A DNA stretch of 64,000 bases from Oopsacas minuta (GCA_024704765.1 JAKMXF010000133.1:620001-684000), one strand, 5' to 3'. Shown: positions 15,009 through 40,799, counted from the first letter of the stretch. Program-made: numbers and translations. The notes: a model not told the origin generated them from the sequence alone.

Positions 15009-15590
15009 CTAAATCCGGAATTTAGCAACAGAATCAGTTGTATCCACATCCATCTCTGTTGGAGTATCGGCTAATCGTTGTTTAGGTAGTTGCTCTGATT
15101 TTTCAATATACCATTTGGGTGAATAAAGTATTTTATCGCTATTTTGAGAAACAATTGAATATTTTGCTGAATAATCACTGAAATGTTCTTGACAGCAAAC
15201 CATCAGTGATTTATCAATCATTTCTTTATCACATCCAGGTAGTAAACAAATAACAAATCTAGTACTCATGTTAACCTTACGAACACACCATTCATGGAAA
15301 TGTATCAGACAAGCATTAGAACAACAAATACATTGATGAGATGTATCAGGACATGAACACCAATAACAACCAAAGATAGCTTTCTTCCAGTTAACATCAC
15401 TGCAGTAAGAAGAAGCAGGAGAAATTGATGGACCCTGAAGACGAGGAATCTTACCTACATCTGTATGATAGTAGAGGATGGAGAGAAGACGTTCGGAAAA
15501 GGGAATTTCAAAGTCACCTTTAAATGCAGATCTCCAGTAGGATTGAAATTTATTAATAGGACTGGCACTCGTACTGGTACTAGTGGCCAT
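15009..15590 (-). CDS. Array gene g: a single Cys/His module, near-copy of module 1 of array gene G1
   Basis: ORF of 193 aa; FQSYWRSAFKGD...SPKWYIEK is almost identical to the N-terminus of ORF 25227-26519. Confidence 0.7.
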   Translation of the reverse strand: MATSTSTSASPINKFQSYWRSAFKGDFEIPFSERLLSILYYHTDVGKIPRLQGPSISPASSYCSDVNWKKAIFGCYWCSCPDTSHQCICCSNACLIHFHEWCVRKVNMSTRFVICLLPGCDKEMIDKSLMVCCQEHFSDYSAKYSIVSQNSDKILYSPKWYIEKSEQLPKQRLADTPTEMDVDTTDSVAKFRI

Positions 15591-15958
15591 TAATAACTAA
15601 TTTCTGAAAAATATTTAGTAAAGACAGTAGTATCAAAGTACATAACAAAATGAATTGAAAGTCATAATTTGTAGATATGTAACCGTAAGCAAACTGGGCA
15701 CAACTCCCCTAAAAATAGATATACAAGAGATATTTCACCAATTAAACCCCCATAGCCTCTAAAGAACAGCCTTTACATACCATAATCAGCCCAAAACAAA
15801 GGTTTATACAAAAATTAAATAATAGAAAATATTCAAATTTATAAAATTACAATAACAAAGAAGTATAATAGAAAAGTCATTCTCCGATCACAATTATAAT
15901 ATACAGGTATACAATTCTAGAGAATATATTGATACAATAATGAGTATATACATACAAC

Positions 15959-16729
15959 CTAGAGCTGATAAGTATGAGAACTATATGAACTCGGATCTGG
16001 TAATGGATTATCATCAGGTGAACTCTTTGAGAGCTTTTTTCCATTATCAGGACACGTCCGCTTTAAGATTTCAGGATTATTAAGAGAGAATTTTCGTTTT
16101 ATAGATTTCTGGTCTGACAAGCGCAAAGATTTTCCGAAGAATGAAGGGTTTTTGGTTTGATGAACAACTAAAACGGGAGAATTAAGAGGTTTAGTTTGGC
16201 TCTTTATGCTTTGGGGGATTGTCTTGCTAGGCGAATTGGAAATGCCTTGTGGTTTAGATCTGAACTCGAGAGAGGGTGCAAAGCTATTAACTACCTCAAC
16301 ATTCTTAGTGACGTCATTATCAGTAGGGTGAGTCTTTTTCAATTTTCCGAGTTCATTAGCTTCTCTGGCATACTTTTGATTCCATTCAAATTCTAACACC
16401 ATCTTATCCATGGTTTCTTCTTTCATTCCAGTTATTTCTTTCTCTATTTTACCTAAAATATCAGCTTGTAGATTCTTGAAAGTAGAAGAAGAATATAAAT
16501 CCTGATGATACTTCTTCATCTTCTCCAATTCTTTGAATTTTTCTCGTTCATTTCTGAATTCAGAAATAATCGCATCTAATTCTGAGATTAGTTTATTTTC
16601 TCTCGATTGAATAACCTCAATCAGCTGAGAGAAATATGTATGAATTTTAGATCTAACATCGCTTGTCATAGTCTCAAAATCCTCTTTATCAAAGTTTATA
16701 CTAGAACACATTAATTGTACATCTTCCAT
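15959..16729 (-). CDS. Array gene f: coiled coil plus low-complexity tail, no Cys module
   Basis: KIHTYFSQLIEVIQSRENKLISELD...LEFEWNQKYAREANELGKL is shared with the other coiled-coil genes; an AG acceptor lies just before the ATG. Confidence 0.7.
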   Translation of the reverse strand: MEDVQLMCSSINFDKEDFETMTSDVRSKIHTYFSQLIEVIQSRENKLISELDAIISEFRNEREKFKELEKMKKYHQDLYSSSTFKNLQADILGKIEKEITGMKEETMDKMVLEFEWNQKYAREANELGKLKKTHPTDNDVTKNVEVVNSFAPSLEFRSKPQGISNSPSKTIPQSIKSQTKPLNSPVLVVHQTKNPSFFGKSLRLSDQKSIKRKFSLNNPEILKRTCPDNGKKLSKSSPDDNPLPDPSSYSSHTYQL

Positions 16730-16995
16730 TCTACAAACTATAATACAATAACTGCGTAAAATCGCTCAGAAATAAATCAATAATTATTACTAATAGATAA
16801 TGATGTGAACGTAATAAAGATAGAAAAGTTGATAAAAATACGAGAAATTGAGAATAGTACACATTGATATGGAAAGTATAGAATCTATTCAAAGTAGATA
16901 ATACAAAAATAATCAAAATTAGATAAAATAATGTTTTTATTTGTGTGATTACAAATCCTATAAAACGTAGAGTATCTCAACAACTAGCTGTACTT

Positions 16996-18201
16996 CTAAT
17001 ACTTAGAAGATTGACCGGTACGAGCACTGATAGACAGTTTGGGTATTTTGTAGGGAGGAGGAGCTGTAGGAATAGGTGGGTACCTGAATGGCTTACCTTG
17101 AGGGGAAGGTAGAACAGTACAAGAAAGAGCAGACTCTGCAAGCTCTGATAAGTGACTATCTTCATTAGAAGAACAGTCACTGATAATATCACGAATATGA
17201 TAAGATGCATGAAGCGAATTAGTAGATTGATTGCTATCTGATTTAATTTCGCTTAGATTGAAATTAGGTATTGGATCAGATTTTGAAATATTAACAGCAT
17301 CAACTACATTGTAAAAATGTGGGGGTTTGGATATAAATCTAGCAATAGTTTTGCTATAAATTGTTTTGTAATCTGATTCAAGTATTGCTAGATGTGTATC
17401 AGAACAAACATTAGCATTTCCTATAGACAACATTTCACATCCAGGATACATGCATAGAGATTCTCCACAGAATTCATGTAACTTCCTACGACACCATTCA
17501 TGTAGATATTGATAGCATTTCTTATCGCACACATAAATGTACTGATTGGGATTTGTAACTTTTCCACACCAATAACAACCTTCAATCGATACACACCAGT
17601 TTTTGTGATCTGTGAATGTAGACTTCAAATGTTCTTCAAGGTAACTATCTCTAGGAATAGGACCTATATCAGTTTTGTAGATTAGTCCTTCATATAATCT
17701 CTTGGAAAAAATAAATTTATTAAAAGATCTAGATTTCTTGGTTTTGACTTTGTTAATAATAACTGGTTCTGACAAACAAACTGAAGTATTATTAGACACG
17801 AGCTTAAGTTCACCAAACTTGCTTACACTCACAGCATCCTTTGGACTCCATTCAAAATCAACACTCAAAGTTTGCTTATCCTCTTCTTCAATTTCAACCA
17901 GCTCTGACTTGATATGAGATAATATATCAATTTGTAATGACCTGACTGTTGAAGAGGAATACAGGTCCTCATGGTATCTTTTTAACTTCTCCAATTCGTT
18001 GATTTTATCTCTTACTTTAACTCGTTTTAGCCTGTAACGAGATAGAATCTCATCCAATTCTGAGATTAGTTTATCTTGTCTCATTCTAATTATATCAATC
18101 AGCTGTGAGAAGCATGTCTGTATTTTAGATCTCACATTACTGGCAATAGTTTCAAAATCTTCTTTATCAGAGTTTAATCTAGAAGAATTCAAATCTTCCA
18201 T
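16996..18201 (-). CDS. Array gene e: coiled coil + Cys/His module + tail with PTAPPPY
   Basis: ORF of 401 aa; the coiled-coil motif is followed by FSKRLYEGLIYKTDIGPIPR...GCYWC...HEWC...CMYPGC...CSDTH. Confidence 0.8.
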   Translation of the reverse strand: MEDLNSSRLNSDKEDFETIASNVRSKIQTCFSQLIDIIRMRQDKLISELDEILSRYRLKRVKVRDKINELEKLKRYHEDLYSSSTVRSLQIDILSHIKSELVEIEEEDKQTLSVDFEWSPKDAVSVSKFGELKLVSNNTSVCLSEPVIINKVKTKKSRSFNKFIFSKRLYEGLIYKTDIGPIPRDSYLEEHLKSTFTDHKNWCVSIEGCYWCGKVTNPNQYIYVCDKKCYQYLHEWCRRKLHEFCGESLCMYPGCEMLSIGNANVCSDTHLAILESDYKTIYSKTIARFISKPPHFYNVVDAVNISKSDPIPNFNLSEIKSDSNQSTNSLHASYHIRDIISDCSSNEDSHLSELAESALSCTVLPSPQGKPFRYPPIPTAPPPYKIPKLSISARTGQSSKY

Positions 18202-18572
18202 TCAATCGCTAGAATACTAGGAATATGAATAAGCATAGACTCTGTAATAGTGTAAATTTATGGTTCCTAAGGACAAGGTTACTTGCAAACACCTACAAAT
18301 AATTCTGTCTACTGACGACGTCAACATGGCCGTGGGAGACGGTCCGGTTGGTCAGATAGGAAACTGTCTGCTACGGGACTGCGATAATGTATGCATTTTA
18401 ATTAATGACGGAACATATATTGTATACATATATAAGCGATCTATAAGTCTAATGTATAATGTGACATAACACAATAATTGTAAGCATAATAAACTTAAGA
18501 TTAACTATTCCATCGTTAACAAACCGTGCCGGTTTTATGGATTTTGAGCGGATAATATAGAGGGGGAATTAT

Positions 18573-19616
18573 TTATTTAAACAGATTCTTTAGTTTTGAA
18601 GGAGATTCTGTGTTAGTAGATTGCTTAGACAACCTATCATAAGCTGAGATGGGAGATATGTCTGTATTGCTTGGGACAGCTTGTGGAATATCAGCTCTAT
18701 GAAAGAATGAAGTAATTTTCTGGTTAGTTGGATCCTTTTTATACCAATGAGGAGTCTTAAGTTCTATCTTACCTGTAAATACATTAAGAATAGTTTTGAA
18801 ATTTCTTTCAAGATCAAGATGATGAGATTCTGAACAAAACTTAACATCTTCTTGTGACGATATTTCACATCCAGGATACATACATAGAGATTCTCCACAA
18901 AATTCATGTAACTTTACACGACACCATTCATGTAGATATTGATAGCATTTCTTATCACACACATAAATGTACTGATTGGGATTTGTAACTTTTCCACACC
19001 AATAACAACCTTCTATTCGTACACGCCAGTTAGGGAAATTAATGAATCTTGCCTTACTATATTCTTCACAGTAACTATCTCTAGGAATAGGACCTATGTC
19101 TGTTTTGTAGATTAATCCTTCATATAATCTCTTGGAAAACGTATGTAAACCCCAGTCTGTACGCTTTATTGTGACGTCACTCCCTTCACCAGTTGTATAA
19201 AGTCTCTCATTAGGAATTTGTGTTAATTTCCCAATTTCATTGGCTTCCCTTGCGTATTTTCTATTCCATTCAAACTCTACAGTTATAGAACTCATTTGTT
19301 TTAATACAGTCAATTCAGATTCAATCTTATTCAATACATCACAATGTACATTACCAACTACAGTAGAAGTATATAGCGAACTTTCATGATACTTTTTCAT
19401 CTTCTCCAATTCATTAATCTTATCTCTATTCTTGATTCTCTCTTGTCTGTAGTGAGATACAATCCCATCCAATCCTGTGAGTAGCTTTTTTCGTCTTTCT
19501 ATAATTACATCAATCAAGTTAGTGAAATATGTCTGAATCTTGGATTTAATATTACTCGCATTTAGCTCAAAATCATTATCATCAAAGTTAATGCTAGAAC
19601 TCATTATATCTTCCAT
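18573..19616 (-). CDS. Array gene d: coiled coil + Cys/His module (probable start MEDIMSS at 19616)
   Basis: The ATG at 19616 aligns with paralog starts; the module is near-identical to module 2 of G1. Confidence 0.8.
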   Translation of the reverse strand: MEDIMSSSINFDDNDFELNASNIKSKIQTYFTNLIDVIIERRKKLLTGLDGIVSHYRQERIKNRDKINELEKMKKYHESSLYTSTVVGNVHCDVLNKIESELTVLKQMSSITVEFEWNRKYAREANEIGKLTQIPNERLYTTGEGSDVTIKRTDWGLHTFSKRLYEGLIYKTDIGPIPRDSYCEEYSKARFINFPNWRVRIEGCYWCGKVTNPNQYIYVCDKKCYQYLHEWCRVKLHEFCGESLCMYPGCEISSQEDVKFCSESHHLDLERNFKTILNVFTGKIELKTPHWYKKDPTNQKITSFFHRADIPQAVPSNTDISPISAYDRLSKQSTNTESPSKLKNLFK

Positions 19617-19734
19617 ACTACCAGTATAGAAATGATCTATATTATAAACAGAGAAAGAGATAAATAACCAGGTAAGAGACTGGCAAGCGAGTGGCAAGTG
19701 AGAACAGTGCACCATTAAAGTGGTAAGTGGAGTA

Positions 19735-19760
19735 ATATATATATATATATATATATATAT
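19735..19760. repeat. (AT)n microsatellite
   Basis: 13 AT units upstream of gene d. Confidence 0.9.
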
Positions 19761-19885
19761 CTGATTAATAATAAAATAGAAGAAGTATTATAAACTAGAA
19801 ATTTAGTTGGTTCAGTTACATAACACCATATTTACCGCGTAATAAAACAAGCACTTCTTCCTTTGTTTGAGTCTCGCCTGCTCCA

Positions 19886-19947
19886 ACAATGGTCACCCTA
19901 ATAATCACTCAAGTAATACCTTGAGTGATTATTATGGTGACCATTGT
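19886..19947. repeat. Fold-back inverted repeat with ~28-bp arms and a 6-nt loop
   Basis: ACAATGGTCAC...TAATAATCACTCAAG-TAATAC-CTTGAGTGATTATTA...GTGACCATTGT, with one mismatch. Confidence 0.85.
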
Positions 19948-20297
19948 CCAGGTTTTAGCTGTCCAATTTCTACATGTTTACATGCCAATTTGAGTTCTAT
20001 TGTATTGTGTCATTTGTATGAAATGTATAACAAATACAATTCGTAATTATTCGTTGGTAATATATTTGGGGATCATTAAAATAAAATAAATGGTCAGATC
20101 CTGGTCTGATATACAACAATCTTGAACTCAATAATTATTAATACTACAAGTATATTTAATAAAGTGATACAAAAATGAAATACGAAAGCGATTAATAAGC
20201 ATAAATAATTATAATTAGTATAAATAATATATTAATAATTCTTTAAAATAAGGGAAATATTCTGTAGAAATAAATGTGTCATGAATTAGTTCGGGAA

Positions 20298-20957
20298 CTA
20301 TTTCTCAGTTTCTTTACGTTTTGGCAGAATATTAATACAATCATAGTGCAACTTTCGTTTAACAGATTGTTTGGTTACAGTTTCCTTTGAAACAGTGCGA
20401 GAAGATCTTGGATAAGTATCAGAATTCATTGGGAATATCTTTTCAGTATATTTATAGTATGATCTGCCTTGTGTATTAGACTTGCTGACAAGTGACGTAG
20501 GGGATGGTGTCCTAATGCCCTGAGAACAAACAGGACTATACACGGGGTATTCAGAATTAACTTTAACCTTTCCGATTTCATTAGCATATTTGGCATAACC
20601 TTTAGTCCATTCAACATCAATAGTCAATATATCTGAATGCTTCTGCTGTAATTCAGATAATTCAGTATTACATCTATCTAGAACTGCATCATGTAGTCCT
20701 TTCACACTCGAAGAAGTATAATTATCTTGATGGTATTTCCTCATCTTTTCCAATTCATGAATCTTCTCTCTAATTCTAAATCTCTCTAGACCGTAATGAG
20801 ATACAATCTCATCCAATTCTGAGATTAGTTGAGTTTGTCTGTGTTGAATACTTTTAATCAGCTGAGAGAAATAAGTATTTAATCTAGATTTAATATCTTC
20901 AACTTCCTGTTTAATATCTTTATCCAAGTTTATTTTGAATTTGAATATCTCTGCCAT
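20298..20957 (-). CDS. Array gene c: coiled coil plus short tail
   Basis: RLNTYFSQLIKSIQHRQTQLISELD...IDVEWTKGYAKYANEIGKVKV. Confidence 0.7.
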   Translation of the reverse strand: MAEIFKFKINLDKDIKQEVEDIKSRLNTYFSQLIKSIQHRQTQLISELDEIVSHYGLERFRIREKIHELEKMRKYHQDNYTSSSVKGLHDAVLDRCNTELSELQQKHSDILTIDVEWTKGYAKYANEIGKVKVNSEYPVYSPVCSQGIRTPSPTSLVSKSNTQGRSYYKYTEKIFPMNSDTYPRSSRTVSKETVTKQSVKRKLHYDCINILPKRKETEK

Positions 20958-21293
20958 GCTATAATAATCTGTGAGAATTTATTACAGATAATTAAATCAT
21001 AGGTGGACATCAAACTTGAGCTTAACAGCTAGTAATTATTTTAATGACTAGCATCGGGCCGCAACTAAGCTTTGAGCCGCAAAAAAGTAACATGTGAGAG
21101 TCAAAACAATAGAAATATATAACACAATGAAAGAATACTAAAATTGGTAATAACAAAATACTAAAACAACTAGTCATTTCAGAGACAATAATCAGGGCAG
21201 TAATATGATGATAAGTCATTAAGAAAGAAATAGTATAGAAACTTTCATCAGAACAATCCACGTAAGGATTAGAGTAACCATACTAGCTAGAGG

Positions 21294-22353
21294 TTATGTA
21301 ATCTTGGATAAGTGTGGAACTAACTGATTAGGAGAACCAAATTTCTTATACCATTTGGGACTTATTTTGGACCTTCTTTCAGTATCATCAATTTTATTAG
21401 CCCTATACATCTCGCCTATATTAGTAGTATGGTCTCTGTTACAACACTTGAAACCATCAGAAGCTTTCTTAGGACATCCAGGATATTGACAGAATTGTAT
21501 TTAGAACGGACTGTACTTTAACTCTACACCACTCATAGAATATTAAGTAACAACGTAAACGACAAAAATATTTATTATTCAATTCATTTAATGTGAATGT
21601 TCCACAGTTGTAACAGCCTTTTATATCAGCTGACCAGTTGGGATAATGAGAAAATTTGGAAGTAAAAGTCTTTAATTCCAAACAATCACGAGGAATAATT
21701 CCAATATCTGTACGTAAAGTAATTAGTTCTTGCAATTCTTTTGGAAAATCACTTTGAAAGAGAGTTACCGAGATTTTATTTCCATTAGGTTTTGAGTTAG
21801 AAGCAATCTTGGACTGATTAAGTGAAGAATGATAACTGTTTGATTTCACATGCGAAGTAGGAATATTGTCATTAGAGGAATTACTATTCGAGGCATTACT
21901 GTTATGTAAGTTATCACTAACAGGTAAAATGTTACTTGATAATGATGATGAGGGAGATAGATAATCATTTGTTTTCAATTTACCGAGTCCACTAGCTTCT
22001 CTAGCGAACTTTTGATTCCATTCAAATTCTAGAATGAGTGAATGATTTTTTCGTAAGTTAGCTAATTGTGGTCCAATCCTACTTATTACATCATCTTGTA
22101 CATCTTTAACGATAGAAGATGAATACATTTCACAAGGAAATATATTAATCTTCTCCAACTCATTGATTTTCTTTTCTTCCTGTCTCTTACGATATATAAT
22201 CTCATCTAATTCTGAGATTAGTTTAGTTCTTCTGAGTTTAATAACCTCAATCAGCTGAGAGAAGTAGGTCTGTATTTTAGTTCTAACATTATTCGCCATT
22301 GTTCCAAAATCTTCCTTATCAGATCTACTGCTAGAAATTTTCTGATCCGCCAT
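21294..22353 (-). CDS. Array gene b: coiled coil + Cys/His module, frameshift at about 21500 (pseudogene or consensus error)
   Basis: ORF 21469-22353 ends mid-module; the shifted frame continues QFCQYPGCPKKASDGFKCCNRDH...ISPKWY...SKIT* to 21294. Confidence 0.7.
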
Positions 22354-22644
22354 TCTAGAAAATTTAGCTAGAAATTACAAGTAAAGTATTGGAGAAATGA
22401 TATCATGCTTTCCTATAAGGTATAATCTGTGTAGAGCAGCCCCATGTACATAACTGCCAATTTGGGTTCTATTCTACGTATGTGAATGTGTAACAAATTG
22501 TGAACATTCACACACGTACAATATTTGTAGAATTTCGCTGGTAATAATTTCGAGAACATTTAAATAAATACAAAAAACAGCAATCTAGAACTCAATAATA
22601 TAAGTAAACTTAAGGAAATATAACAGACCAACTAACGATGATCT

Positions 22645-23406
22645 TTAAAGCTCAAATTTTGTCTGAGTAACTGTGTCAATATGGCCAGTCCTATCAGGTC
22701 TGTCAGCTCCATCAGCTCGATAAATAGGAGCTGAGTATCCTTCTATACATACACGTTTTGCAGAAGTGTGTTTTGAGTACCCAGGATTGTAAGGAGGCGG
22801 TCTAACTTGTTTAAAAGATTGATTATCAGTGAATTTATCTGGGGAAATATCTGTATAACGTTGATAGTTAGGACTAGCTTGAATTGAAGCAATGGATTGT
22901 TCATTAGATTTAGATTTCGAACTGATTTCATGACCACCATCCCTAGAAGTGGAAGGGAATATCTTGCTAGACCTAGGAGTAGTACTGAACTCAGAAATTT
23001 CAGTTTTAACCTTTTTGTTCAAAATCGTAGAGAATGAGCGTATATTAAATTTTCCGATTGCACTTGCTTCTCTTGCATACTTTCTATCCCATTCAAATTC
23101 TATAAACACTGTTGAGTTTTCGCGTAATCTAGCCAATTCAGATTCTATGTCACTCAATTTCCTATCAGAATGCGTATAGCTCCTCTCTTGATTACTTCTC
23201 TTCAGCTCCAATTCTTTCATCTTATCTTGCTCTTGTCTGTAGTGAGTTATAACCTCACTTAATTCTGATATCAGTTCTATTCTTCTGAGCTTAATGACTT
23301 CAATCAGTTGAGAGAAATAAGTATGGATTTTAGTCGCTATTTTAACTGCTTCTAATTCAAAATCTTTCTGATCGGATTGTATACTAGAAGTGAGGATTTC
23401 TGCCAT
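22645..23406 (-). CDS. Array gene a: coiled coil + tail with RPPPY (probable start MAEILTS at 23406)
   Basis: KIHTYFSQLIEVIKLRRIELISELS...IEFEWDRKYAREASAIGKF; an AG lies immediately before the ATG, as in paralogs. Confidence 0.7.
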   Translation of the reverse strand: MAEILTSSIQSDQKDFELEAVKIATKIHTYFSQLIEVIKLRRIELISELSEVITHYRQEQDKMKELELKRSNQERSYTHSDRKLSDIESELARLRENSTVFIEFEWDRKYAREASAIGKFNIRSFSTILNKKVKTEISEFSTTPRSSKIFPSTSRDGGHEISSKSKSNEQSIASIQASPNYQRYTDISPDKFTDNQSFKQVRPPPYNPGYSKHTSAKRVCIEGYSAPIYRADGADRPDRTGHIDTVTQTKFEL

Positions 23407-23608
23407 TCTACACAATACTAAATAAATACATATATGGACATGCGACAATACTACGTTAATATTGAATTGAGGAGAAATCAGAATGATAGGGTCGTGAGTA
23501 ACAAATAGTATTACTACAGTCAACAGATTGCTTTCATTCAATTTAGCAATTTGTACTATAAGGGGAAATGGAAATATTTTATGAACATTGATTCAAACAC
23601 AAATCGTA

Positions 23609-23758
23609 CAGTTAACTCCTGTTATACCGAACACGAATATATTGAAATACTCGCTTAAATCGTCTGAAATTATGCAAATAATGTCACAAACAGTAATGGA
23701 AAGTCATCAGTTATATCGAAGTAATTATCGAGGTCCCTTAAGCAACGGGAGTTGATTG
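23609..23758. mobile_element. Tc1/pogo-type MITE (CAGTCAACTCC family)
   Basis: TA-CAGTTAACTCCTGTT ... CAACGGGAGTTGATTG-TA. Confidence 0.6.
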
Positions 23759-23902
23759 TATTTTGAATTGCAATATATGGAATTCTTGATACTAAATTAG
23801 CTATGTATATGATTAATAATATCAAAAGCAAGAACAAGCAACATCTGTATTTAGCAAACAAATAGATATTTGTATATGATTGGCTAACACATCCAACAAT
23901 AA

Positions 23903-26519
<2,617 letters not shown>

Positions 26520-29915: not shown

Positions 29916-30473
29916 AAAACAACTCCTACATAACATAGAAACCTGTATATCACGACTGCTCTATAATTATTGGTCCCATGTACATAGCTATTATACATGT
30001 AAAGTACACGTGGGAGCACTTTCTCTTGTGATTTTCAGACGCCTGAATCAGGATATTTAAAAGGTCTAAAAATTTCAAGCCCCAACTATATTTTTGTTTC
30101 AAACGATATGCATATAGGAGAGAGTCCAGTGCTCCTAGATAAACCCTGCAATAACAGTCACTTATCTACAGTCATACCGGTTTATTTCGCAGTATGATGT
30201 ACCCATATTTACCTACCAATTGTACTACATCACGACCTATTTTGATCCTCTGATAGTAGATAGAATCAAATAGGGTGTATACCAGGGGTCGGCAACTGCG
30301 GCCCGAAAAACATTTTCATGGCCGGCCGAAGAATGGGCTACAACCTTATTATATTACCATAATATTCTACTTACGTATATATTCATTGATAGCATTAGAA
30401 ATCTGCTCATCACTTTCATAAATTTTCCAACACAAAATATTCCTTTTCAATACCTACTTTTTTATTTGTTATA

Positions 30474-31806
30474 CAGGGTGTATCATAAATGCTGTCGTGT
30501 AGTAACAATATTCATATAGTAACGGATTGTATTACAACCTTAATTAGAATTCAATTTATTATGCAGTATCGTAAAGTATTACGTTAATGCTATCTAAAAC
30601 AATACTTAGCTACTTTGGGCTGATCGTATTTCTTAGAAAATTTTTTCACATTGACGCTCCTTGATATATTCGGAAAATGAATGTTAAAGATTATGGTTTG
30701 GAAATCCGTAATCAAGCTATTGGCATGCTAAAGGCTGGCATGACCCAGAAAGACGTAGCTATAAAGCTCCAAGTTAGTTTGAGATCAATCGAACGGTGGT
30801 GGCGCAAGCAGAAGCTCGGAAATCTCAAAAAACTGTAGCCCATCCTGGGAGGAATACGAGTGTACAAAAGGCCGCCAAAATTATAATTTCGAAATCTCTC
30901 GGAAAAGATACAAATCTACTAGGAAATTGGCTGATATAGTGACCTCAAGGGGCTATCCTATACCGCATTCGACCGTTCATCGTTATCTTCAGGATAATAT
31001 TGGCGCGAAATCTTACAAAAGGCCGCGATTGACGGAGAAAATGAAGGAAAAACGACTCAAATTTGCAGAATCTCGCAAAGAATGGACTGTCGAAGATTGG
31101 AAACAGGTATTGTGGTCTGATGAAGCACCCTTTCAATTGTTCAATACTCCAAACCGACAGAACGATCGGGTTTGGGCTAAAAATTCAGACAATGTTGAAC
31201 CTTGCGTTCAAGTTAAATTTCCAGGGAAAATTCATGTCTGGGGCATGATGTCCCATCGAGTTGTCTCTGAACTCCATATAGTGCCTCCAAAACAGACAAT
31301 AAATGGTTGCTACTATCGGAACTATATTTTGAATAAAACCTGTAAGGATGCAATAGAACGCGACTCAGAAAATGGGACAATATTACAGCGATCAATGCTC
31401 TCAGATATGTCCAGTTTTATTTTATGCAGGATGGTGCTCCAGCACACTGCAAATTTGACTCAGTCCTTGTGTGAAAAGAATTTCCCAAAGTTTTGGATGA
31501 AAGAAGAGTGGCCAGGAAACTCGCCCGACCTCAATCCTATTGAGAATCTATGGTCTATTCTGAAAGATAGCGTCAGCCAAATGGAGAATATGACGAAGCT
31601 GGACCATTTAATTTCTCAAGTAAAAAAGGCTTGGGAGGGCATTGATCCAAAATTTTTAGAAAATTTAGTAGCAAGTATGCCTAATAGGACTAGATCAGTT
31701 ATAGAATGCGATGGAGATTACATAAATAAATAATTAGCTTAAACGATCCACTTTTTTGTGTTTTGAGATATTTCCTAGAACCCGACAATAATTATGATAC
31801 ACCCTG
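30474..31806 (+). mobile_element. Tc1/mariner-superfamily DNA transposon, 1333 bp, defective
   Basis: TIRs CAGGGTGTATCATAA-x-TGTCG at both ends, TA TSDs, internal transposase. Confidence 0.9.
30677..31733 (+). pseudogene. Frameshifted Tc1-like DDE transposase
   Basis: The HTH start MNVKDYGLEIRNQAIGML..VAIKLQVSLRSIERW has shifts near 30820 and 30905. VLWSDEAPF and SPDLNPIENLW are present; the QDGAPAH motif is readable only in a shifted frame near 31425-31445. Confidence 0.9.
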
Positions 31807-32244: not shown

Positions 32245-35118
32245 TCAATTCACGTCCGCGTCCGTTTCCATGTCTTCATTGTCACTGAGAGGGAGTGGTG
32301 TGCTTTCAGGACTGAGATCAGTGTTCCTATTCTTAACATCAGATAAACGGAAGTTAATCTGAATGCTATTATCTATAGGCATACCGACGTCTCCAGAAGC
32401 TTTCGGAATAGAGGGTCGATTAGCTTGAGTTTGGACCGAACAATTCGGCTGCGTTAGAGAGTTTTCTTCAGTGAGAAATGGATTAATTTTATCGGTGTTG
32501 GTTTCTGTCATATCAACATCACTGGAATTATCATGTAAAAATGGATTATTAACATCTTTACTGATATCAGTGGTATCAGGTGTATTGGGAATGGTGGATG
32601 ATGAGTCTGAACCTTGAGAAAACTGAAAAGGGTTATTATAATCAAGATCCAAATCGCGTTTTGCTTTACCAACTTCAAATAATGGTCCATCTGTAGCACT
32701 AGCATTACAAGCTACAGTTTGTTCTGGAGGATTAATAGGCGGTATAACTTGTGCTGGTATTTGAGTTAGACTGTCTCCTTGAGATGATGTTTGTGGAGCG
32801 TAATTCGTGGATAGGGGTGATGCATTCAAATTGATTAGATCTTCAGTGCAGGAATTCGTTGTATTACTTTTAGTTCGAGCAACTCGTGTTTCACTAATAT
32901 GCATAGGAGATTGTATAGAGGATTGAGGTAGAATATTATTCTCATTCATATTGGATTGTGATGGAATAATCTGTGTATTGCTGGAATTTGTAGGGGCAAA
33001 ATTTATGGGCACAAAATCCTTCATTTGAATTGGTTGAAACGTATTTAACATTGGTTGCTGTGAGCATTGTAATTCTGTTCTAACAACCATCAACAGTTCT
33101 CCTAACTTATTCATACCTTTCCCATCCCCACCATCTCCCCAGAACTTATCATTCTTCGTGTGCTCAAATATAAGCTTTTCACCAGTCCTAATCAATATCT
33201 GAGCAAGATCTATATTTTGATTGAATTTACATCTCAATGCTTTTAACATAACCTGCATTTTAATTTTTGGCCAATTAGTTCGAACCCAGCGCTGTACACC
33301 AGGATTTCTAGAGAAATCAAATGCATCTCTTGGAGCTTGGAGCTGACTAACGAAATATACATAAGGAGTTCCAGCAAACTTACAAGCTTGAAAATAATGC
33401 TCAGTTGTTGGCCATATCATATTATCAATCACAAGGTTGCTACATGGATAGAAATTAGTCAGCTCATAAAATGGTTCATTTCTGTTATAGAAATTGATAG
33501 GTGTTAGGCTATAATCATGATACCATCTGGGTCCAAGTGCGAACTCAGTACTCTTCAAGAGATGAGAATACTGATTGAATCGCTCATACTCTTTTGAATG
33601 AGTACGATTACAACAGTCAAATCCATAAGCTGATGGAAACTTGCAACCCATTACTCTACATAGTTTCTTTTTTGAAGTATTTGTGTACAAACAGTGGACC
33701 CATTCATTCAGCAGAAATATACATCTGTCAGAACATGTGATACAGTTCATGCGGAGCTGGTTTGTACAGCACCAATAGCAAAGAGGAATATCAACATTCC
33801 AATTCGGATTAGGAATATTATTCATCATGGGAATAAATTGGATTAATTTTCTGGGAATTGGACCTACGTCTTGGAAGTAATATAAGAACTCAGTTAACTC
33901 CCATGAAAATACACAGTGTTGTAGACCTGGTGATGGAGAATACTGTTTCGGTGGAGTGGATTGTTGCGGAACTGCTGGTGGAGAAACTGGATTTTGAGAA
34001 TGATTGGCATTTACTCTTTGATTATTGACTCTGTTAACATCAGGGATATCACGTTTTTTATACCAGTCTGGTCCTATGGCTGTTAATCTTTCACTGTCTA
34101 TTTTCCTGACTTGGCTATACTTTTCTTTTATAGCTATTGTATGTTCTCTGCTACAACAATCAAAACCATCAGCTGCTGTCTTATTACAACCTGTATTCCT
34201 ACACATATTAACACCAGTAAGGGAACAAACTTTACTCCTACACCATTCATAGAAAATTAAGTAACAGCGATATCTACAGAAATTGTCATTTCCTATAGAT
34301 TTGTTACCACACCAATAACAGCCTTCTATCTGTCTCAACCAGTTAGGAGAGCTAGAGTAAGGAGAAATTAGATGATTTTCATTTGGCTTTGTTCTTGGAA
34401 TTATACCAATGTCTGTTTGGAATATCATTGCGTTGTGTAGATCTATTGGGAATTCCATTATTTGATCAAAATTAGCAGATGTATCATTGGTCTTGTTCTT
34501 ACCATTTCCTTGGGACTGTATTTTCTGTTTAGGTGGTGGCTTAGTGATCTGAGAAGTTGAATTCGAAATTTGTTGAAGGGGTACATTAGATAATCCTCCA
34601 TTAGAACAATACCAAGAAGGTCCTTCTCTAATAACTGTCTTCAAGAGAATCTTATGATCTGAACCTTTAGGAAATTCTGAATCATAATATCCGTTATGTT
34701 TAGTACCACAATACAAATGATTATCTTTTGTATTTGTATCACAACCAGGGAATCTACAGAACCTTCTATTAGTAAAGTAATGAACTCTCTCAACACACCA
34801 ATCATGTAGATAGAAGAAACATTCTTTAGTACAACATATTCCATTATAATCAGTGTTATCATCTTTACACCAGTAACAACCATCTATTTGTTTGTTCCAA
34901 TTATTTGAATGAAAATATTTAGGGTTATCTCCTGCTGTATTAAGCTTAAATCCACGAGGAATACAACCTACATCTGTTTCATAACAGAGAGTGTTTAAGA
35001 GTCCTTCGAAGAATTGTATTACTTGTCCACTGATTGATACTGGAATAAATGTATCTTTACAGAAACTTGCCCAATACATGAGAAATGGACCCCATCCAGT
35101 TCTAGAATCGGATGCCAT
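32245..35118 (-). CDS. Array gene G3: three Cys/His modules + NADAR + tail with three NPF motifs, 957 aa
   Basis: Intact ORF; NADAR at about 33070-33500 with TTEHYFQACKF and EHTKNDKFWGDGGDGKGMNKLG. Confidence 0.9.
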   Translation of the reverse strand: MASDSRTGWGPFLMYWASFCKDTFIPVSISGQVIQFFEGLLNTLCYETDVGCIPRGFKLNTAGDNPKYFHSNNWNKQIDGCYWCKDDNTDYNGICCTKECFFYLHDWCVERVHYFTNRRFCRFPGCDTNTKDNHLYCGTKHNGYYDSEFPKGSDHKILLKTVIREGPSWYCSNGGLSNVPLQQISNSTSQITKPPPKQKIQSQGNGKNKTNDTSANFDQIMEFPIDLHNAMIFQTDIGIIPRTKPNENHLISPYSSSPNWLRQIEGCYWCGNKSIGNDNFCRYRCYLIFYEWCRSKVCSLTGVNMCRNTGCNKTAADGFDCCSREHTIAIKEKYSQVRKIDSERLTAIGPDWYKKRDIPDVNRVNNQRVNANHSQNPVSPPAVPQQSTPPKQYSPSPGLQHCVFSWELTEFLYYFQDVGPIPRKLIQFIPMMNNIPNPNWNVDIPLCYWCCTNQLRMNCITCSDRCIFLLNEWVHCLYTNTSKKKLCRVMGCKFPSAYGFDCCNRTHSKEYERFNQYSHLLKSTEFALGPRWYHDYSLTPINFYNRNEPFYELTNFYPCSNLVIDNMIWPTTEHYFQACKFAGTPYVYFVSQLQAPRDAFDFSRNPGVQRWVRTNWPKIKMQVMLKALRCKFNQNIDLAQILIRTGEKLIFEHTKNDKFWGDGGDGKGMNKLGELLMVVRTELQCSQQPMLNTFQPIQMKDFVPINFAPTNSSNTQIIPSQSNMNENNILPQSSIQSPMHISETRVARTKSNTTNSCTEDLINLNASPLSTNYAPQTSSQGDSLTQIPAQVIPPINPPEQTVACNASATDGPLFEVGKAKRDLDLDYNNPFQFSQGSDSSSTIPNTPDTTDISKDVNNPFLHDNSSDVDMTETNTDKINPFLTEENSLTQPNCSVQTQANRPSIPKASGDVGMPIDNSIQINFRLSDVKNRNTDLSPESTPLPLSDNEDMETDADVN

Positions 35119-35438
35119 TATTGCAAAGCAAAAAATCTAGAATAGACAACATATAGAATAGATAATATGATCTAAGTACATACAGAACAGGGAACGCCTG
35201 CAAACCACTAACGTAACCTTGGCACATTACCAACAGGGTCAGGAGCGGATCCAAGAAAGAGCTAGGTCTGGGAGAGAGTATATAGTAAAGCGTGAAATTA
35301 CAATTTACATTCATGTACCATGGAATGGTGGAATTAGTATGGATGTAGCAGTATAAAAGTAACAATTGCCAGCCTGATCAATTTATAACTCGAAGAAATA
35401 GTACAAGTAAAAGCTTCTCGATTAATGTGGTGGAGACT

Positions 35439-35546
35439 CAGAGGCGTAGCTAGGGTCGCATGATGGATGGTGCGGCATAAGTGTGGCAAAGTAGTAGGTA
35501 CAGTTGCGGAATGTGACGCAGGTGCTGCACCCTGGCTACTTCTCTG
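35439..35546. mobile_element. Small GC-rich MITE, possibly PIF/Harbinger-type
   Basis: Imperfect TIRs CAGAGGCGTAGCTAGGGT and CAGAGAAGTAGCCAGGGT; TSD not clear. Confidence 0.45.
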
Positions 35547-35721
35547 GGTATAATAATTATTTGGTGGTTCAGAATACTCATTGCACAGGGACGTAGCGAG
35601 GGGAAATTATTGAGTACTTATCCTATAGTTTATATCTTCACGAGTTCAGGCGCAATAGAAAGTAAATAAAATGTATAAAAATAATAAATTCATCTGGCAA
35701 AATAAAATTACAAACTTAAGT

Positions 35722-38134
35722 TCAGTAATCTGAATCACTGTCATCAGATGAAGAATACAGTTGGACTTTTCTAAGTGATGTTATATCTGTATCTGATGTA
35801 ATATCTTCTGTAAGAGAAGCTTTTGACACAATTTTCAAATTAGGAACTTTCGGTAAAGAAACAAATGAAACATCAATACTGTTATCAGAATAAAACTGAT
35901 TAGATTTGAATCCTTCCCTTATACCAACCAACATATCTCCGAGAGAACTATCTCTACAAACAAGAGGTCTCATCCCTGTCATAATTAACAATCCTCTAAG
36001 TATACTGTTCTGTTGAAACTTAGCCAAAACACCTTTGTAAATTGTTTGTTCTAAGATTCTCTCCCAATCTGGTCTCACCCATTTCTCACAAGTTCTTCTC
36101 TTCATCCATCTCTCCAACTCACTAACACATTCCATACGACAGATACGGTTGCTATAAGGAGTTCCAACCAACTTCTGAGCACATAAATAATGATACACAC
36201 TAGGCCAAATAGATCCTTGTATAAACAATAGAGAAGGGAAATATATAGAAAACTCATAGAAAGCACCTGTCCTGGAGAAATGAATGGGAGATAAATCAGA
36301 GTACCACTTCGGTCCGAGAATCAATTCAACTTCTTCTTCTATGTTCAATGATAAATTCCCTCTCAATTCAGAGATATCCTTAATATGCTCTAAACTACAA
36401 CATACACAACCAGCAGCTCGCGAATTCTCACACCCAGGTAATACACATAACTTAACTCCACACGACGTCTCCAGTTTTCTAACACACCATTCATGAAACA
36501 GTAACCAACATCTTTTACCACAGGTTAACCCGTGGAAACTAGTGTTATTCAATTCACACCAGTAGCAGCCTGTAATCTCCATTCTCCAGTTATTATGTGT
36601 AGAGTATTCACTAGCTTGTTGATTGTAGCTGTTACGAGGGATAATACCAACATCAGTGTACTGAGCTAACAAGTTAGTTAGCTTACGAGATAATGTGAAG
36701 GGATATACCACAGGTAGATTCATATTATTAGATTCTTGGATATAATGTAGAAATGGATTCTGTGGTAATCCGAGTTCTTTCTTCGAATAAATACTGCTGT
36801 CAGTTTCCAAAGTATGAAGATGATCTTGTGTAATTGGTTTAGTAGACTTGGTAAATGTTGTACTAGGATGTGGCATATTGTATGACGTAATATTGTTGTA
36901 TATGTCTGTTGATAAATTAGCTCCTTGTTTTGAAGTAGAAATAGTTTCTAAGAAAGGATTATTATAATCAGAGTTCATAGTTATGTCAAGTTCAGTAGAA
37001 GAATTATTTGTTACTTTAATATTAGATTGATTATCAACTACTATTGGCTGTTGAGGAATCTTTGAAGATAAATGTATAGAATTCTGTGAGGAGTCAGATT
37101 CTTTGTACCAGTGAGGTCCTGTTAATCCTTCACTGTGTATTATCCTGACTTGGCTATACTTTTCTTTTATAGCTATTGTATGTTCTCTGCTACAACAATC
37201 AAAACCATCAGCTGCTGTCTTATTACAACCTGTATTCATACACATATCAACACCAGTAAGGGAACAAACTTTACACCTAGACCATTCATAGAATATCAAG
37301 TAACAGCGATATCTACAGAATGCATTTCCCTCAGACGTAGGTATTTCCGATTTGCGACCACACCAATAACAGCCTTCTATCTGTCTCAACCAGTTAAGAG
37401 AGCTAGAGTAAGGAGAAATTAGATGATGTTCTTTCAGGGGTGTTCTTGGAATTATACCAATGTCTGTTTGGAATATCATTGCGTTGTGTAGATCTATTGG
37501 GAATTCCATTATTTGATCAAAATTAGCAGATGTATCATTGGTCTTGTTCTTACCATTTCCTTGGGACTGTATTTTCTGTTTAGGTGGTGGCTTAGTGATC
37601 TGAGAAATTGAATTCAACATTTGTTGAAGGGGTACATTAGATAATCCCCCATTAGAACAATACCAAGAAGGTCCTTCTCTAATAACTGTCTTCAAGAGAA
37701 TCTTATGATCTGAACCTTTAGGAAATTCTGAATCATAATATCCGTTATGTTTAGTACCACAATACAAATGATTATCTTTTGTATTTGTATCACAACCAGG
37801 GAATCTACAGAACTTTCTATTAGTAAAGTAATGAACTCTCTCAACACACCAATCATGTAGATAGAAGAAACATTCTTTAGAACAACATATTCCATTATAA
37901 TCAGTGTTATCATCACTACACTAGTAACAACCAATTATTTGAATGAAAATATTTAGTTTTATCTCCTGCTGTATTAAGCTTAATTCCACGAGGAATACAA
38001 CCTACATCTGTTTCATAACAGAGAGTGTTTAAGAGTCCTTCGAAGAATTGCATTTTTTGACCACTTAATCCAAATAATGCCTCTTTAGAGTATGTTATCC
38101 AATAGCAGAGAAACGGCGTCACTTCAGAGGCCAT
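35722..38134 (-). pseudogene. Array gene G4: three modules + degenerate NADAR, disabled in module 1
   Basis: A 17-bp deletion relative to G5 at about 37931-37939, plus TGG>TAG at 37921-37923 in GCYWC. The rest of the frame is open to 35722. Confidence 0.85.
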
Positions 38135-38351
38135 TATATCTAATGATTCTAATCAGTGGCAAAAATAAATATAAATTAACCAAAAAAGGTGCTCTACACA
38201 ATTATTGTTATTATCAAAAGTTGCAAAATATATAAAAATAACGTGATAAAGATAAACAGCGAAATATAGTGTATCTCCACCTATTAAATACTAACTGGAC
38301 TATATGAAATGAAAGATACAGTGATGTCATGGGACTAGAGAATCATCATCG

Positions 38352-40799
38352 TCAATTTGAGACATCTGACCATGAATCTGAATCAAAATAATCAGATGAA
38401 GAATAATGTTTAACTTTTCTAGGAAGAATACCCATACCTTTCTGTATTTTAACTCCACCTGTACTAGAAGCTTTTGACCCAATTTTCAAATTAGGAACTT
38501 TCGGTAAAGAAACAAATGAAACATCAATACTGTTATCAGAATAAAACTGATTAAATTTGAATCCTTCCCTTATACCAACCAACATATCTCCGAGAGAACT
38601 GTCTCTACAAACAAGAGGTCTCATCCCAGTCATAATTAACAATCCTCTAAGTATACTGTTCTGTTGAAACTTAGCCAACACAGCTTTGTAAATTGTTTGT
38701 TCTAAGATTCTCTCCCAATCTGGTCTCACCCATTTCTCACAAGTTCTTCTCTTCATCCATCTCTCCAACTCACTAACACATTCCATACGACAGATACGGT
38801 TGCTATAAGGAGTTCCAACCAACTTCTGAGCACATAAATAATGATACACACTAGGCCAAATAGATCCTTGTATAAACAATAGAGAAGGGAAATATATAGA
38901 AAACTCATAGAAAGCACCTGTCCTGGAGAAATGAATGGGAGATAAATCAGAGTACCACTTCGGTCCGAGAATCAATTCAACTTCTTCTTCTATGTTCAAT
39001 GATAAATTCCCTCTCAATTCAGAGATATCCTTAATATGCTCTAAACTACAACATACACAACCAGCAGCTCGCGAATTCTCACACCCAGGTAATACACATA
39101 ACTTAACTCCACACGACGTCTCCAGTTTTCTAACACACCATTCATGAAACAGTAACCAACATCTTTTACCACAGGTTAACCCGTGGAAACTAGTGTTACT
39201 CAATTCACACCAGTAGCAGCCTGTAATCTCCATTCTCCAGTTATTATGTGTAGAGTATTCACTAGCTTGTTGATTGTAGCTGTTACGAGGGATAATACCA
39301 ACATCAGTGTACTGAGCTAACAAGTTAGTTAGCTTACGAGATAATGTGAAGGGATATACCACAGGTAGATTCATATTATTAGATTCTTGGATATAATGTA
39401 GAAATGGATTCTGTGGTAATCCGAGTTCTTTCTTCGAATAAATACTGCTGTCAGTTTCCAAAGTATGAAGATGATCTTGTGTAATTGGTTTAGTAGACTC
39501 GGTATATGTTGTACTAGGATATAGCATATTGTATGATGTAATATTGTTGAATATGTCTGTTGGTAAATTAGCTTCTTGTTTTGGAGTAGAAATAGTTTCT
39601 AAGAAAGGATTATTATAATCAGAGTTCATAGTTATGTCAAGTTCAGTAGAAGAATTATTTGTTACTTTAATATTAGATTGATTATCAACTACTATTGGCT
39701 GTTGAGGAATCTTTGAAGACAAATGTATAGAATTCTGTGAGGAGTCAGATTCTTTGTACCAGTGAGGTCCTGTTAATCCTTCACTGTGTATTATCCTGAC
39801 TTGGCTATACTTTTCTTTTATAGCTATTGTATGTTCTCTGCTACAACAATCAAAACCAGCTGCTGTCTTATTACAACCTGTATTCATACACATATCAACA
39901 CCAGTAAGGGAACAAACTTTACTCCTACACCATTCATAAAAAAATAAGTAACAGCGATATCTACAGAATGTATTTCCCTCTGAGACAGGTGTTTCCGATT
40001 TGTTACCACACCAATAACAGCCTTCTATCTGTCTCAACCAGTTAAGAGAGCTAGAGTAAGGAGAATTTAGATGATGTTCTTTCAGAGGTGTTCTTGGAAT
40101 TATACCAATGTCTGTTTGGAATATCATTGCGTTGTGTAGATCTATTGGGAATTCCATTATTATAGATTTATCATCGGGCATATTCTTAACAGTATTTTGA
40201 GTCATATTTTGTTTTCGGAATCTCTTAGTGCTTTGGGAAGTTGAATTCATAATTTGTCGAAGAGGAACATTAGATAATCCTCCATTAGAACAATACCAAA
40301 TAGGTCCTTCTCGAATAACTGTCTTTAATAGAGACTTATGATCAAATCCTTTAGGCAATTCAGACTCAAACTTTGCTTTGTGTTTCGTATCACAATATAA
40401 ACTATTATCTTTATTTGTATCACAACCAGGGAATCTACAGAACCTTCTATTAGTAAAGTAATGAACTCTCTCAACACACCAATCATGTAGATAGAAGAAA
40501 CATTCTTTAGTACAACATATTCCATTATAATCAGTGTTATCATCTTTACACCAGTAACATCCAATTATTTGTTTATTCCAATTATTTGAATGAAAATATT
40601 TAGGTTTATCTCCTGCTGTATTAAGCTTAAATCCACGAGGAATACAACCTACATCTGTTTCATAACAGAGAGTGTTTAAGAGTCCTTCGGAGAATTGTAT
40701 TTCTTGTCCACTGATTGATACTGAAATAAATGTATCTTTACAGAAGCTTTCCCAGTACTTGAGAAATGGGCCCCATCTAGCTCTAGGATCGGTTGCCAT
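38352..40799 (-). CDS. Array gene G5: three Cys/His modules + degenerate (pseudo-)NADAR (probable start MATDP at 40799)
   Basis: Intact ORF of about 815 aa; the NADAR-like segment at about 38555-38940 reads PSVYHYLCAQKL and WVRPDWE..AKFQQN and lacks FWGDG. Confidence 0.85.
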   Translation of the reverse strand: MATDPRARWGPFLKYWESFCKDTFISVSISGQEIQFSEGLLNTLCYETDVGCIPRGFKLNTAGDKPKYFHSNNWNKQIIGCYWCKDDNTDYNGICCTKECFFYLHDWCVERVHYFTNRRFCRFPGCDTNKDNSLYCDTKHKAKFESELPKGFDHKSLLKTVIREGPIWYCSNGGLSNVPLRQIMNSTSQSTKRFRKQNMTQNTVKNMPDDKSIIMEFPIDLHNAMIFQTDIGIIPRTPLKEHHLNSPYSSSLNWLRQIEGCYWCGNKSETPVSEGNTFCRYRCYLFFYEWCRSKVCSLTGVDMCMNTGCNKTAAGFDCCSREHTIAIKEKYSQVRIIHSEGLTGPHWYKESDSSQNSIHLSSKIPQQPIVVDNQSNIKVTNNSSTELDITMNSDYNNPFLETISTPKQEANLPTDIFNNITSYNMLYPSTTYTESTKPITQDHLHTLETDSSIYSKKELGLPQNPFLHYIQESNNMNLPVVYPFTLSRKLTNLLAQYTDVGIIPRNSYNQQASEYSTHNNWRMEITGCYWCELSNTSFHGLTCGKRCWLLFHEWCVRKLETSCGVKLCVLPGCENSRAAGCVCCSLEHIKDISELRGNLSLNIEEEVELILGPKWYSDLSPIHFSRTGAFYEFSIYFPSLLFIQGSIWPSVYHYLCAQKLVGTPYSNRICRMECVSELERWMKRRTCEKWVRPDWERILEQTIYKAVLAKFQQNSILRGLLIMTGMRPLVCRDSSLGDMLVGIREGFKFNQFYSDNSIDVSFVSLPKVPNLKIGSKASSTGGVKIQKGMGILPRKVKHYSSSDYFDSDSWSDVSN

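Follow-up and report, generated by a model that had tools for sequence, protein, structure and literature searches.

A modular NADAR gene array in the glass sponge Oopsacas minuta combines active-type enzymes with predicted dead twins

Background

Characterised NADARs of the YbiA type, and likewise one from the sponge Amphimedon, strip ADP-ribose off guanine and cytosine bases of DNA and RNA (PMC11125620, PMC12945103); for sponge NADARs it has been suggested that they protect against actinomycete genotoxins (PMC12945103). Here we describe a tandem array of 12 genes in the glass sponge Oopsacas minuta (genome of 61.46 Mb in 365 contigs, ~35 % G+C) located at positions 15009-40799 of a 64,000-nucleotide stretch of contig C133 (C133:620001-684000), which we call the window. 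In five of these genes a NADAR domain stands behind three copies of a conserved module, and in others the module is joined to a coiled coil or stands by itself. We tentatively read the array as an intracellular modular NADAR family that provides targeted erasers, non-cutting twins and module adaptors for modified nucleic acid.

Within the YbiA family (E. coli YbiA, 2B3W; Phytophthora nicotianae NADAR, 8BAU), the genes G1-G3 of the array have the same predicted fold and the same Glu/Lys/Asp/Trp set, including the Glu of the last strand. The known members of that family are free-standing single domains, whereas in the array the domain follows three modules, is accompanied by long disordered tails and also exists in a conserved version that appears to be catalytically dead. 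A second point of comparison is given by the toxin-antitoxin pairs DarT1-NADAR (DarTG1) and YarT-YbiA, which share with the array a NADAR of the type that reverses base ADP-ribosylation and the idea of countering a toxin. These pairs are bacterial and come with an ADP-ribosyltransferase partner; the array, in contrast, is eukaryotic and no such partner gene is present among the window open reading frames (ORFs) scanned. The last NADAR strand of G1-G3 carries Glu and not the Asp of the DarT1-linked subfamily, which places these genes outside DarTG1, and specificity would here come from the fused modules, not from a cognate toxin.

In animals, the C. elegans protein SNA-3, a nuclear protein with three NADARs, is needed for spliced-leader trans-splicing (PMC9303266, as cited in PMC11125620). 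SNA-3 and the sponge's own multi-NADAR genes resemble the array genes in being animal NADAR proteins of a spliced-leader-using organism, but SNA-3 has three NADARs and no such zinc module while the array genes have one NADAR and three modules. In ZAP/PARP13, nucleic-acid-binding zinc fingers are joined to a dead enzyme domain that also belongs to ADP-ribose biology and that selection has retained. The combination of fingers with a retained dead domain is the same in both cases; ZAP/PARP13 however belongs to a writer superfamily and the array to an eraser, and only in the array do dead and active forms keep matched targeting modules, apparently by gene conversion. The glass-sponge genome papers searched do not mention NADAR and the NADAR papers searched do not mention zinc. 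As far as the literature was searched, neither the module nor a module-NADAR fusion, coiled-coil adaptors or matched dead twins have been described.

Results

Twelve co-oriented genes with five architectures

The initial annotation of this DNA proposed 12 co-oriented genes of five architectures between a PAQR gene and C1D. ORFs together with Pfam and profile scans bear this out: all 12 ORFs are on the minus strand, between a PAQR/HlyIII gene and C1D, and they consist of a module only (g), a coiled coil only (a, c, f), a coiled coil and a module (b, d, e), three modules and an intact NADAR (G1-G3) or three modules and a degenerate NADAR (G4, G5). The array is nevertheless less intact, and the family larger, than had been claimed, with G4 a pseudogene, G3 split and e frameshifted in the assembly, and with a 13th member, G6, elsewhere on the contig. 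The members are as follows (window coordinates, except for G6).

15009-15590, minus strand: gene g, module only, 193 amino acids (aa), 97 % identical to G3 module 1
15959-16729, minus strand: gene a, coiled-coil domain and low-complexity tail, without module
16996-18201, minus strand: gene b, coiled coil and one module (m2 class)
18573-19616, minus strand: gene d, coiled coil and one module 91-92 % identical to G3 module 2; splice acceptor AG at 19638-19637
20298-20957, minus strand: gene c, coiled coil only
21345-22353, minus strand: gene e, coiled coil and module, frame broken near 21500 in the assembly
22645-23406, minus strand: gene f, coiled coil only; splice acceptor AG at 23409-23408
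23903-26519, minus strand: G3, modules 1-2, (CAA)n polyQ tract, module 3 and active-type NADAR (24371-24814)
27069-29936, minus strand: G1, three modules, YbiA-type NADAR with catalytic residues (27885-28325) and long low-complexity tail
32245-35118, minus strand: G2, three modules, active-type NADAR (33064-33504) and tail with three NPF motifs
35722-38136, minus strand: G4, pseudogene copy of G5; module 3 and predicted dead NADAR (35902-36285) 99 % identical to those of G5
38352-40799, minus strand: G5, three modules and predicted dead NADAR (38553-38936); modules 1-2 match G2
C133:744841-747117, plus strand: G6, 13th member, ~85 kb beyond G5 between ALG10 and SNX17, three modules and predicted dead NADAR

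NADAR domains of active and dead type

The Pfam NADAR profile (PF08719; gathering cut-off 35.1 bits) matches G1, G2 and G3 with scores of 113.2, 106.2 and 111.6 bits and E-values of 2e-32 to 3e-30. G4 and G5 also pass the cut-off, with 41.5 and 40.2 bits, over profile positions 31-122 only. The NADARs of G1-G3 are 45-50 % identical to E. coli YbiA, and that of G1 matches YbiA with an E-value of 2e-37 and the Phytophthora NADAR with 1e-11. An AlphaFold2 (AF2) model of G1 module 3 plus NADAR matches 2b3w with a template modelling (TM) score of 0.81 normalised to YbiA, a root mean square deviation of 1.9 and an E-value of 7.8e-11; for the ADP-ribose-bound structure 8bau the E-value is 2.5e-7. The P. 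nicotianae residues that contact ADP-ribose or are catalytic, namely E43, K50, E125, D130 and W133 (PMC11543638), all have equivalents in G1-G3 (TEHYFQ..K; YEHT.ND.FWGDGG), which include the hallmarks of the YbiA family: the last-strand Glu (E125), the Glu of the SEHYF motif, the Lys and the D..W pair.

The NADARs of G4, G5 and G6 depart from this pattern. The first Glu is replaced by Tyr, and a 16-residue deletion removes the second Glu together with the FWGDGG loop, suggesting that this form is catalytically dead. The same form is found in other species. Between species it is 75-77 % identical, with a ratio of non-synonymous to synonymous substitution rates (dN/dS) of ~0.05 at saturated synonymous sites, and it is the best-conserved part of the dead genes. 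For comparison, identity between species is 76 % for the active NADAR, 80 % for C1D, 59-68 % for modules and 27-34 % for linkers. As judged from these alignments the dead NADAR is old and strongly conserved, and its low dN/dS argues for a maintained pseudoenzyme. The split into intact and degenerate NADARs made in the initial annotation is therefore upheld by the residues of the two forms.

Module 3 runs directly into the NADAR without a linker and the two are modelled jointly with a predicted TM score (pTM) of 0.80, which argues that module 3 is probably a rigid N-terminal extension of the enzyme. The part of DarT1-linked NADARs proposed to form a DNA groove occupies the equivalent position (PMC11543638), and by analogy module 3 may have a comparable place. 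Genome-wide (C222, C288, C354, C111, C33) there are 26 NADAR matches, including multi-NADAR genes, and the module accompanies only those on C133.

Active and dead twins share their targeting half

In a tree of 86 modules the copies fall into four position classes: m1, m2, m3 ahead of an active NADAR and m3 ahead of a dead one. Inside these classes, other assemblies hold orthologues for each of the G1-, G2- and G3-type lineages, and also for the dead lineage; it follows that the three-module gene and its main paralogues are older than the species splits.

For every dead gene, in three genomes, modules 1-2 cluster with those of an active gene from its own genome. G1 and G6 are 94 % identical in modules 1-2, with a synonymous divergence (dS) of ~0 (1 synonymous and 20 non-synonymous differences), while their module 3 and NADAR are 36-37 % identical. 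The corresponding values for G2 and G5 are 86-90 % (dS 0.12-0.15) and 34 %. In a second species the active gene P0002 and its two dead neighbours are up to 97-98 % identical in modules 1-2 and differ in the cassette that follows, and in one of these pairs the tail behind the cassette is alike again. In a third assembly the pattern is seen by tree and synteny: the dead gene P0011 shares a contig with the active P0005, at a distance of ~56-80 kb. P0011 sits just after a DEAH helicase and ALG10, as G6 does here, and its m1 and m2 cluster with P0005 and not with G6. The match of modules 1-2 within three genomes suggests that gene conversion keeps active and dead twins alike, the simplest reading being repeated conversion confined to the targeting half. 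Judging by sequence identity, the short genes are derived from the G3 type, g from module 1 and d from module 2.

A conserved module with two putative zinc sites

The module is ~133 aa long. In an alignment of 75 copies from several genomes, conservation reaches 95-100 % at eight positions (C46, C49, C61, C65, C86, C91, C103 and H107, numbered after G1 module 1), and the module is near-invariant also at TD.G.IPR, NW, EW and GP.WY. The eight residues are consistent with two zinc sites, CCCC followed by CCCH. An AF2 model of the module based on the 75-row alignment has a predicted local distance difference test score (pLDDT) of 93.9 and a pTM of 0.88. Pfam gave nothing above threshold for the module; the whole-module model gave a best E-value of 2.3 against PDB with Foldseek, a best Z of 3.2 against 48,161 chains with VIA-align and a best TM of 0.43 in an Atlas shape search. 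These searches, along with that of PDB sequences, agree with the earlier claim that the module is unknown to Pfam and without structural match. The model thus suggests a compact, confidently predicted fold without known relative at the level of the whole module; the structure searches covered the module as a whole, and a sub-domain such as one of the two zinc sites may still have a match.

The first site has the spacing C-x2-C ... C-x3-C-x4-H-x2-C, which fits the C4HC3 ligand set of PHD fingers. Its leads are weak: the extended PHD of BRD1 is the best PDB sequence match (E 0.022), and an Atlas feature score of 0.86 for extended PHD fingers is taken as a lead only. The likeness to PHD and extended-PHD fingers is one of spacing; the matches are sub-threshold, the His at the PHD position is kept in 45 of 75 module copies (60 %) and the next Cys in 66 of 75, and there is no structural match to the module.

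The second site, with the spacing C-x4-C-x10-11-C-x3-H, resembles the C3H fingers of WRC, Zf_WRKY19 and Rtr1, again by spacing and with all matches sub-threshold. The second finger also shows a weak likeness to the CxC6 cluster that accompanies KDZ transposases. The second site has a homologue in a free-standing finger, C.LPGC...FC[SC]..H (hhalign 97.5 %, E 5e-12), that forms tandem repeats in a few non-sponge proteins (P0045, P0052, P0044, P0049-P0051) and for which single copies scanned alone gave no Pfam family at cut-off. P0045, from the dictyostelid Acytostelium subglobosum, has four free fingers followed by a PARP catalytic domain; another non-sponge protein has four free fingers followed by a NADAR domain, and a third combines the finger with ankyrin repeats. 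Word-based searches for further free-finger proteins returned only the queries themselves, so that the partner domains are known from two proteins. In those two proteins the fusions would represent a second, independent link between the finger and ADP-ribose enzymes.

A coiled coil predicted to dimerise

The coiled-coil domain of genes a-f is ~135 aa long and 43-54 % identical among the six genes. A homodimer model has an interaction prediction score from aligned errors (ipSAE) of 0.56, compared to 0.00 for the best control; this mark is reached by 21 of 30 solved homodimers and by 0 of 23 monomers. The dimer runs agree in at least 49 % of contacts with a partner pLDDT of at least 56, and the closest contacts fall at i + j ~77, hence an antiparallel pairing. 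The coiled coil is thus predicted to form an antiparallel homodimer.

The initial annotation called this domain a TRIM-type coiled coil. The dimer prediction would fit that name, as does a helical domain of ~135 aa; the sequence evidence falls short of it, with sub-threshold matches to Pfam TRIM_CC (E 0.013, 15.8 bits against a cut-off of 30) and TRIM45 (E 0.042). No RING or B-box is found by Pfam, and the coiled coil starts at residue 1. Unlike TRIM coiled coils the domain is part of a sponge family of ~100 genes: it matches ~100 further ORFs genome-wide, mostly of 420-445 aa. One of them lies in the window (53721-55040, plus strand), and its C-terminal domain is unrecognised by Pfam, PDB sequences and Atlas.

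Distribution and synteny

A genome-wide scan with the module profile gave 24 matches, all on C133, and outside the array only those of G6. When 1.84 billion representative proteins were searched exhaustively with HMMER, there were 52 matches, 43 of them strong (whole or most of the module), and the strong matches that were traced lie on large contigs of four other assemblies in the European Nucleotide Archive (ENA), namely ERZ25071281, ERZ25072730, ERZ20067936 and ERZ26869290. In one of these an AAA-ATPase is followed by C1D (78 % identical) and then by the array; in another the array is followed by PAQR (75 % identical), HMG-CoA synthase and TAF6. Both flanks are therefore conserved in other species. 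The assemblies that share this synteny are presumably other glass sponges, and the modular NADAR family is apparently specific to this group.

The architectures of the window recur in the other assemblies together with three further ones: a module and a coiled coil in reversed order, a coiled coil with two modules and a decayed NADAR, and a 2102-aa ankyrin-repeat protein ending in one module. Gene content differs between the arrays of different assemblies. Taken together, the 43 strong matches, differing arrays, pseudogenes and gene conversion indicate a lineage-specific tandem expansion with turnover. At a distal locus of one other assembly (ENA ERZ25071281, L022 12339-22205) three NADAR genes are followed by at least five AIG1/GIMAP-type GTPase genes; here, the 10 kb lying 3-13 kb beyond G6 showed nothing of the kind.

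The genes and the element that border or interrupt the array in the window are the following.

13551-14495, minus strand: PAQR (HlyIII) gene on one side of the array, found next to the array of another species as well
30927-31733, plus strand: Tc1/mariner transposase remnant (DDE_3, HTH_Tnp_Tc3_2) in the only long array gap, G1-G2; outside the family
41614-42051, minus strand: C1D gene on the other side, likewise next to the array of another species

Intergenic gaps in the array measure 201-681 bp, with the exception of the 2.3-kb gap between G1 and G2 that holds the transposase remnant.

State of the assembly

Three of the 12 array genes, G4, G3 and e, are broken in the assembly. G3 is present as two ORFs (25227-26519 and 23903-25204), because a TTAA (25340-25343) that interrupts a long (CAA)n run shifts the frame. 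This microsatellite spans 25235-25443 and encodes polyQ, or in the shifted frame polyT or polyN. In G4, module 1 is disrupted by a frameshift near 37937 and by a TAG inside the GCYWC motif. In gene e, contigs from runs X1 and X4 have two extra T near 21500 (X4 depth 1183/1190), which yields an intact module.

The source sample comprises four runs, three of them DNA-like and none on record as RNA. The three DNA-like runs have a flat depth of ~45-205 over 19400-25330, except at the end of that stretch and at 23558-23755. At the latter position, between gene f and G3, depth is in 8- to 25-fold excess with many divergent loose ends; this segment is a high-copy repeat and perhaps a small mobile element. 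That the array is an assembly duplication, an artefact raised in the initial annotation, was considered and rejected: depth in the DNA-like runs is flat over 19400-25330 apart from the places named, the paralogues differ widely and syntenic arrays exist in three other assemblies.

Transcription and trans-splicing

The fourth run, X4, behaves differently. Its depth is 47-59 between genes and 540-2800 over genes e, f and G3, a contrast of up to 50-fold. X4 contigs terminate at 19638 and 23409, where they carry 11 additional letters (AAAAAACTTAC+AG context) that are not found in the window. Both positions are AG acceptors after pyrimidine tracts, 1-21 nt before the start codons of d and f.

19636-19660 and 23407-23430: acceptor sites with spliced-leader end, in run X4 contigs

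At nine dispersed places in the genome a conserved mini-exon has these extra letters as its 3' end and is followed by GTAAGT, and the eight loci retrieved (L004-L011) share a conserved upstream box, the mini-exon and the GTAAGT donor. By these sequence features the nine loci are spliced-leader RNA genes. Trans-splicing is known in the glass sponge Aphrocallistes (PMC10282587).

Depth contrast and leader ends together indicate that X4 most likely holds RNA and that at least genes d and f are most likely made into trans-spliced mRNA, which speaks against an untranscribed array, another objection that the initial annotation had raised. Most other array genes have a similar acceptor just before the ATG, and the array, tight and co-oriented as it is, may give rise to a polycistronic transcript.

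Discussion

If the array encodes a family of erasers, twins and adaptors, the modules would aim its proteins at a target, most likely nucleic acid that is ADP-ribosylated or otherwise N-glycosidically modified. The active-type proteins G1-G3 would cut the adduct off, as characterised YbiA-type NADARs do with ADP-ribose on guanine and cytosine. The dead twins G4-G6 would bind the same target without cutting and serve as reader, shield or competitor. Proteins with coiled coil and module would be antiparallel dimers that offer two modules and could compete or bridge, and solo module proteins could act likewise. The most likely setting would be protection against microbial toxins that ADP-ribosylate bases, with endogenous regulation equally compatible with the data here.

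Several points weigh against this interpretation. E. coli YbiA also cuts intermediates of the riboflavin pathway (as cited in PMC11543638), so the substrate may be something other than nucleic acid. NPF motifs, often NPF[LFI], occur 34 times in linkers and tails across species compared to 6.0 expected (~5.7-fold); they are found in G2 to G5 and in many orthologues. EH domains of endocytic proteins have NPF as their classic ligand, and the motifs suggest endocytic EH-domain partners rather than chromatin. Pfam found no ADP-ribosyltransferase domain among the ORFs of the window that were scanned, which comprise the array genes and most of the flanking ORFs with at least 150 aa; PARP catalytic-domain loci number ~15 or more in the genome and are unlinked to the array, and a genome scan for exotoxin-type ADP-ribosyltransferases gave one marginal match on another contig. 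The zinc sites of the module are putative ones read from its conserved Cys and His, and run X4 is a probable RNA run. Finally the domains are conserved with no significant positive selection, where a pathogen arms race predicts otherwise.

The initial annotation went further towards immunity and saw an innate-immune sensor or effector array, with rapid birth and death, that detects or reverses ADP-ribosylation by microbial toxins or viruses. We consider this possible but doubtful. Much of the layout is as such a locus would have it, namely a tandem array with pseudogenes (G4, perhaps G3), gene conversion, species-specific gene content, a mixture of active, dead and enzyme-less members and a coiled coil common to ~100 other genes; moreover the distal locus of one other species adjoins an AIG1/GIMAP-type GTPase array, and a defence role of sponge NADARs has been proposed (PMC12945103). 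While pseudogenes, gene conversion and differing arrays support the claim of birth and death, its speed does not hold: the orthologous lineages are old and constrained, with dN/dS between species of 0.15-0.23 for modules and 0.05 for the dead NADAR. Pairwise tests revealed no significant excess of amino-acid changes, the best case being G1/G6 with 20 non-synonymous and 1 synonymous differences (P = 0.064). Pfam scans of the array also found no TIR, death, NACHT, signal peptide or other immune hallmark. The alignments indicate domains conserved under purifying selection and not fast-evolving. Such strong conservation of all domains argues for a fixed target and not for an evolving pathogen surface, and a fixed target is more easily pictured as a chemical adduct on nucleic acid than as a protein ligand. 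By analogy with characterised NADARs, a role in reversing ADP-ribosylation is plausible. Given the literature on removal of ADP-ribose from bases and the sponge defence proposal, this part of the earlier functional idea was therefore reasonable and had been partly anticipated in print.

A more ambitious claim can be made, which we regard as unlikely as it stands: the array would be a new eukaryotic eraser-and-decoy system in which matched active and dead NADAR pairs whose first two modules are kept alike by ongoing gene conversion, a novel module fold and dimeric module adaptors that tune access to the common target allow glass sponges to survive base-modifying toxins from filtered or hosted microbes.

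An endogenous role on RNA or chromatin, with the modules binding nucleic acid and the NADAR acting on an RNA end or base in parallel to SNA-3, seems improbable to us. The sponge does trans-splice, with spliced-leader RNA genes at 9 places and the leader found on d and f; NADAR is expanded in the genome (26 matches), SNA-3 provides a precedent, the fingers weakly resemble PHD-like and WRC-like fingers that bind chromatin or DNA, and the domains are under strong purifying selection. But the multi-NADAR genes elsewhere in the genome are more SNA-3-like than the array genes, the NPF motifs point away from the nucleus, and many paralogues, dead twins and pseudogenes would be unexpected for a housekeeping factor.

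It is very improbable that the array serves metabolite damage control, with the NADARs acting as N-glycosidases on reactive small molecules such as riboflavin intermediates and the modules only scaffolding or localising them. To our knowledge animals do not make riboflavin, and three tandem modules, gene-converted dead twins and dimeric enzyme-less members are hard to explain on this basis, even though the 45-50 % identity to E. coli YbiA and the riboflavin activity cited above for the family agree with it. Hardly credible, lastly, is a drifting lineage-specific expansion with little present function, for instance of a domain domesticated from a mobile element, since the CxC6-like second finger, the three broken genes and the Tc1/mariner remnant that could suggest it are set against flanks syntenic across species on both sides (flanking proteins 75-78 % identical), dN/dS of 0.05-0.23, evidence of transcription and a family that comes without accompanying transposase or terminal repeats.

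Conclusions

What is known so far of NADAR in animals amounts, as to its role, to one assayed sponge enzyme and a defence hypothesis in the literature. The array described here is a natural dissection kit of 26 kb that provides the enzyme with modules, modules on a predicted dead enzyme, single modules on a scaffold predicted to dimerise and the module alone. Concerted evolution of the targeting half only, repeated in three genomes, is an unusual signature and would imply that both twins have to recognise one common target. Knowing what the module binds would point to the physiological substrate of animal NADARs.

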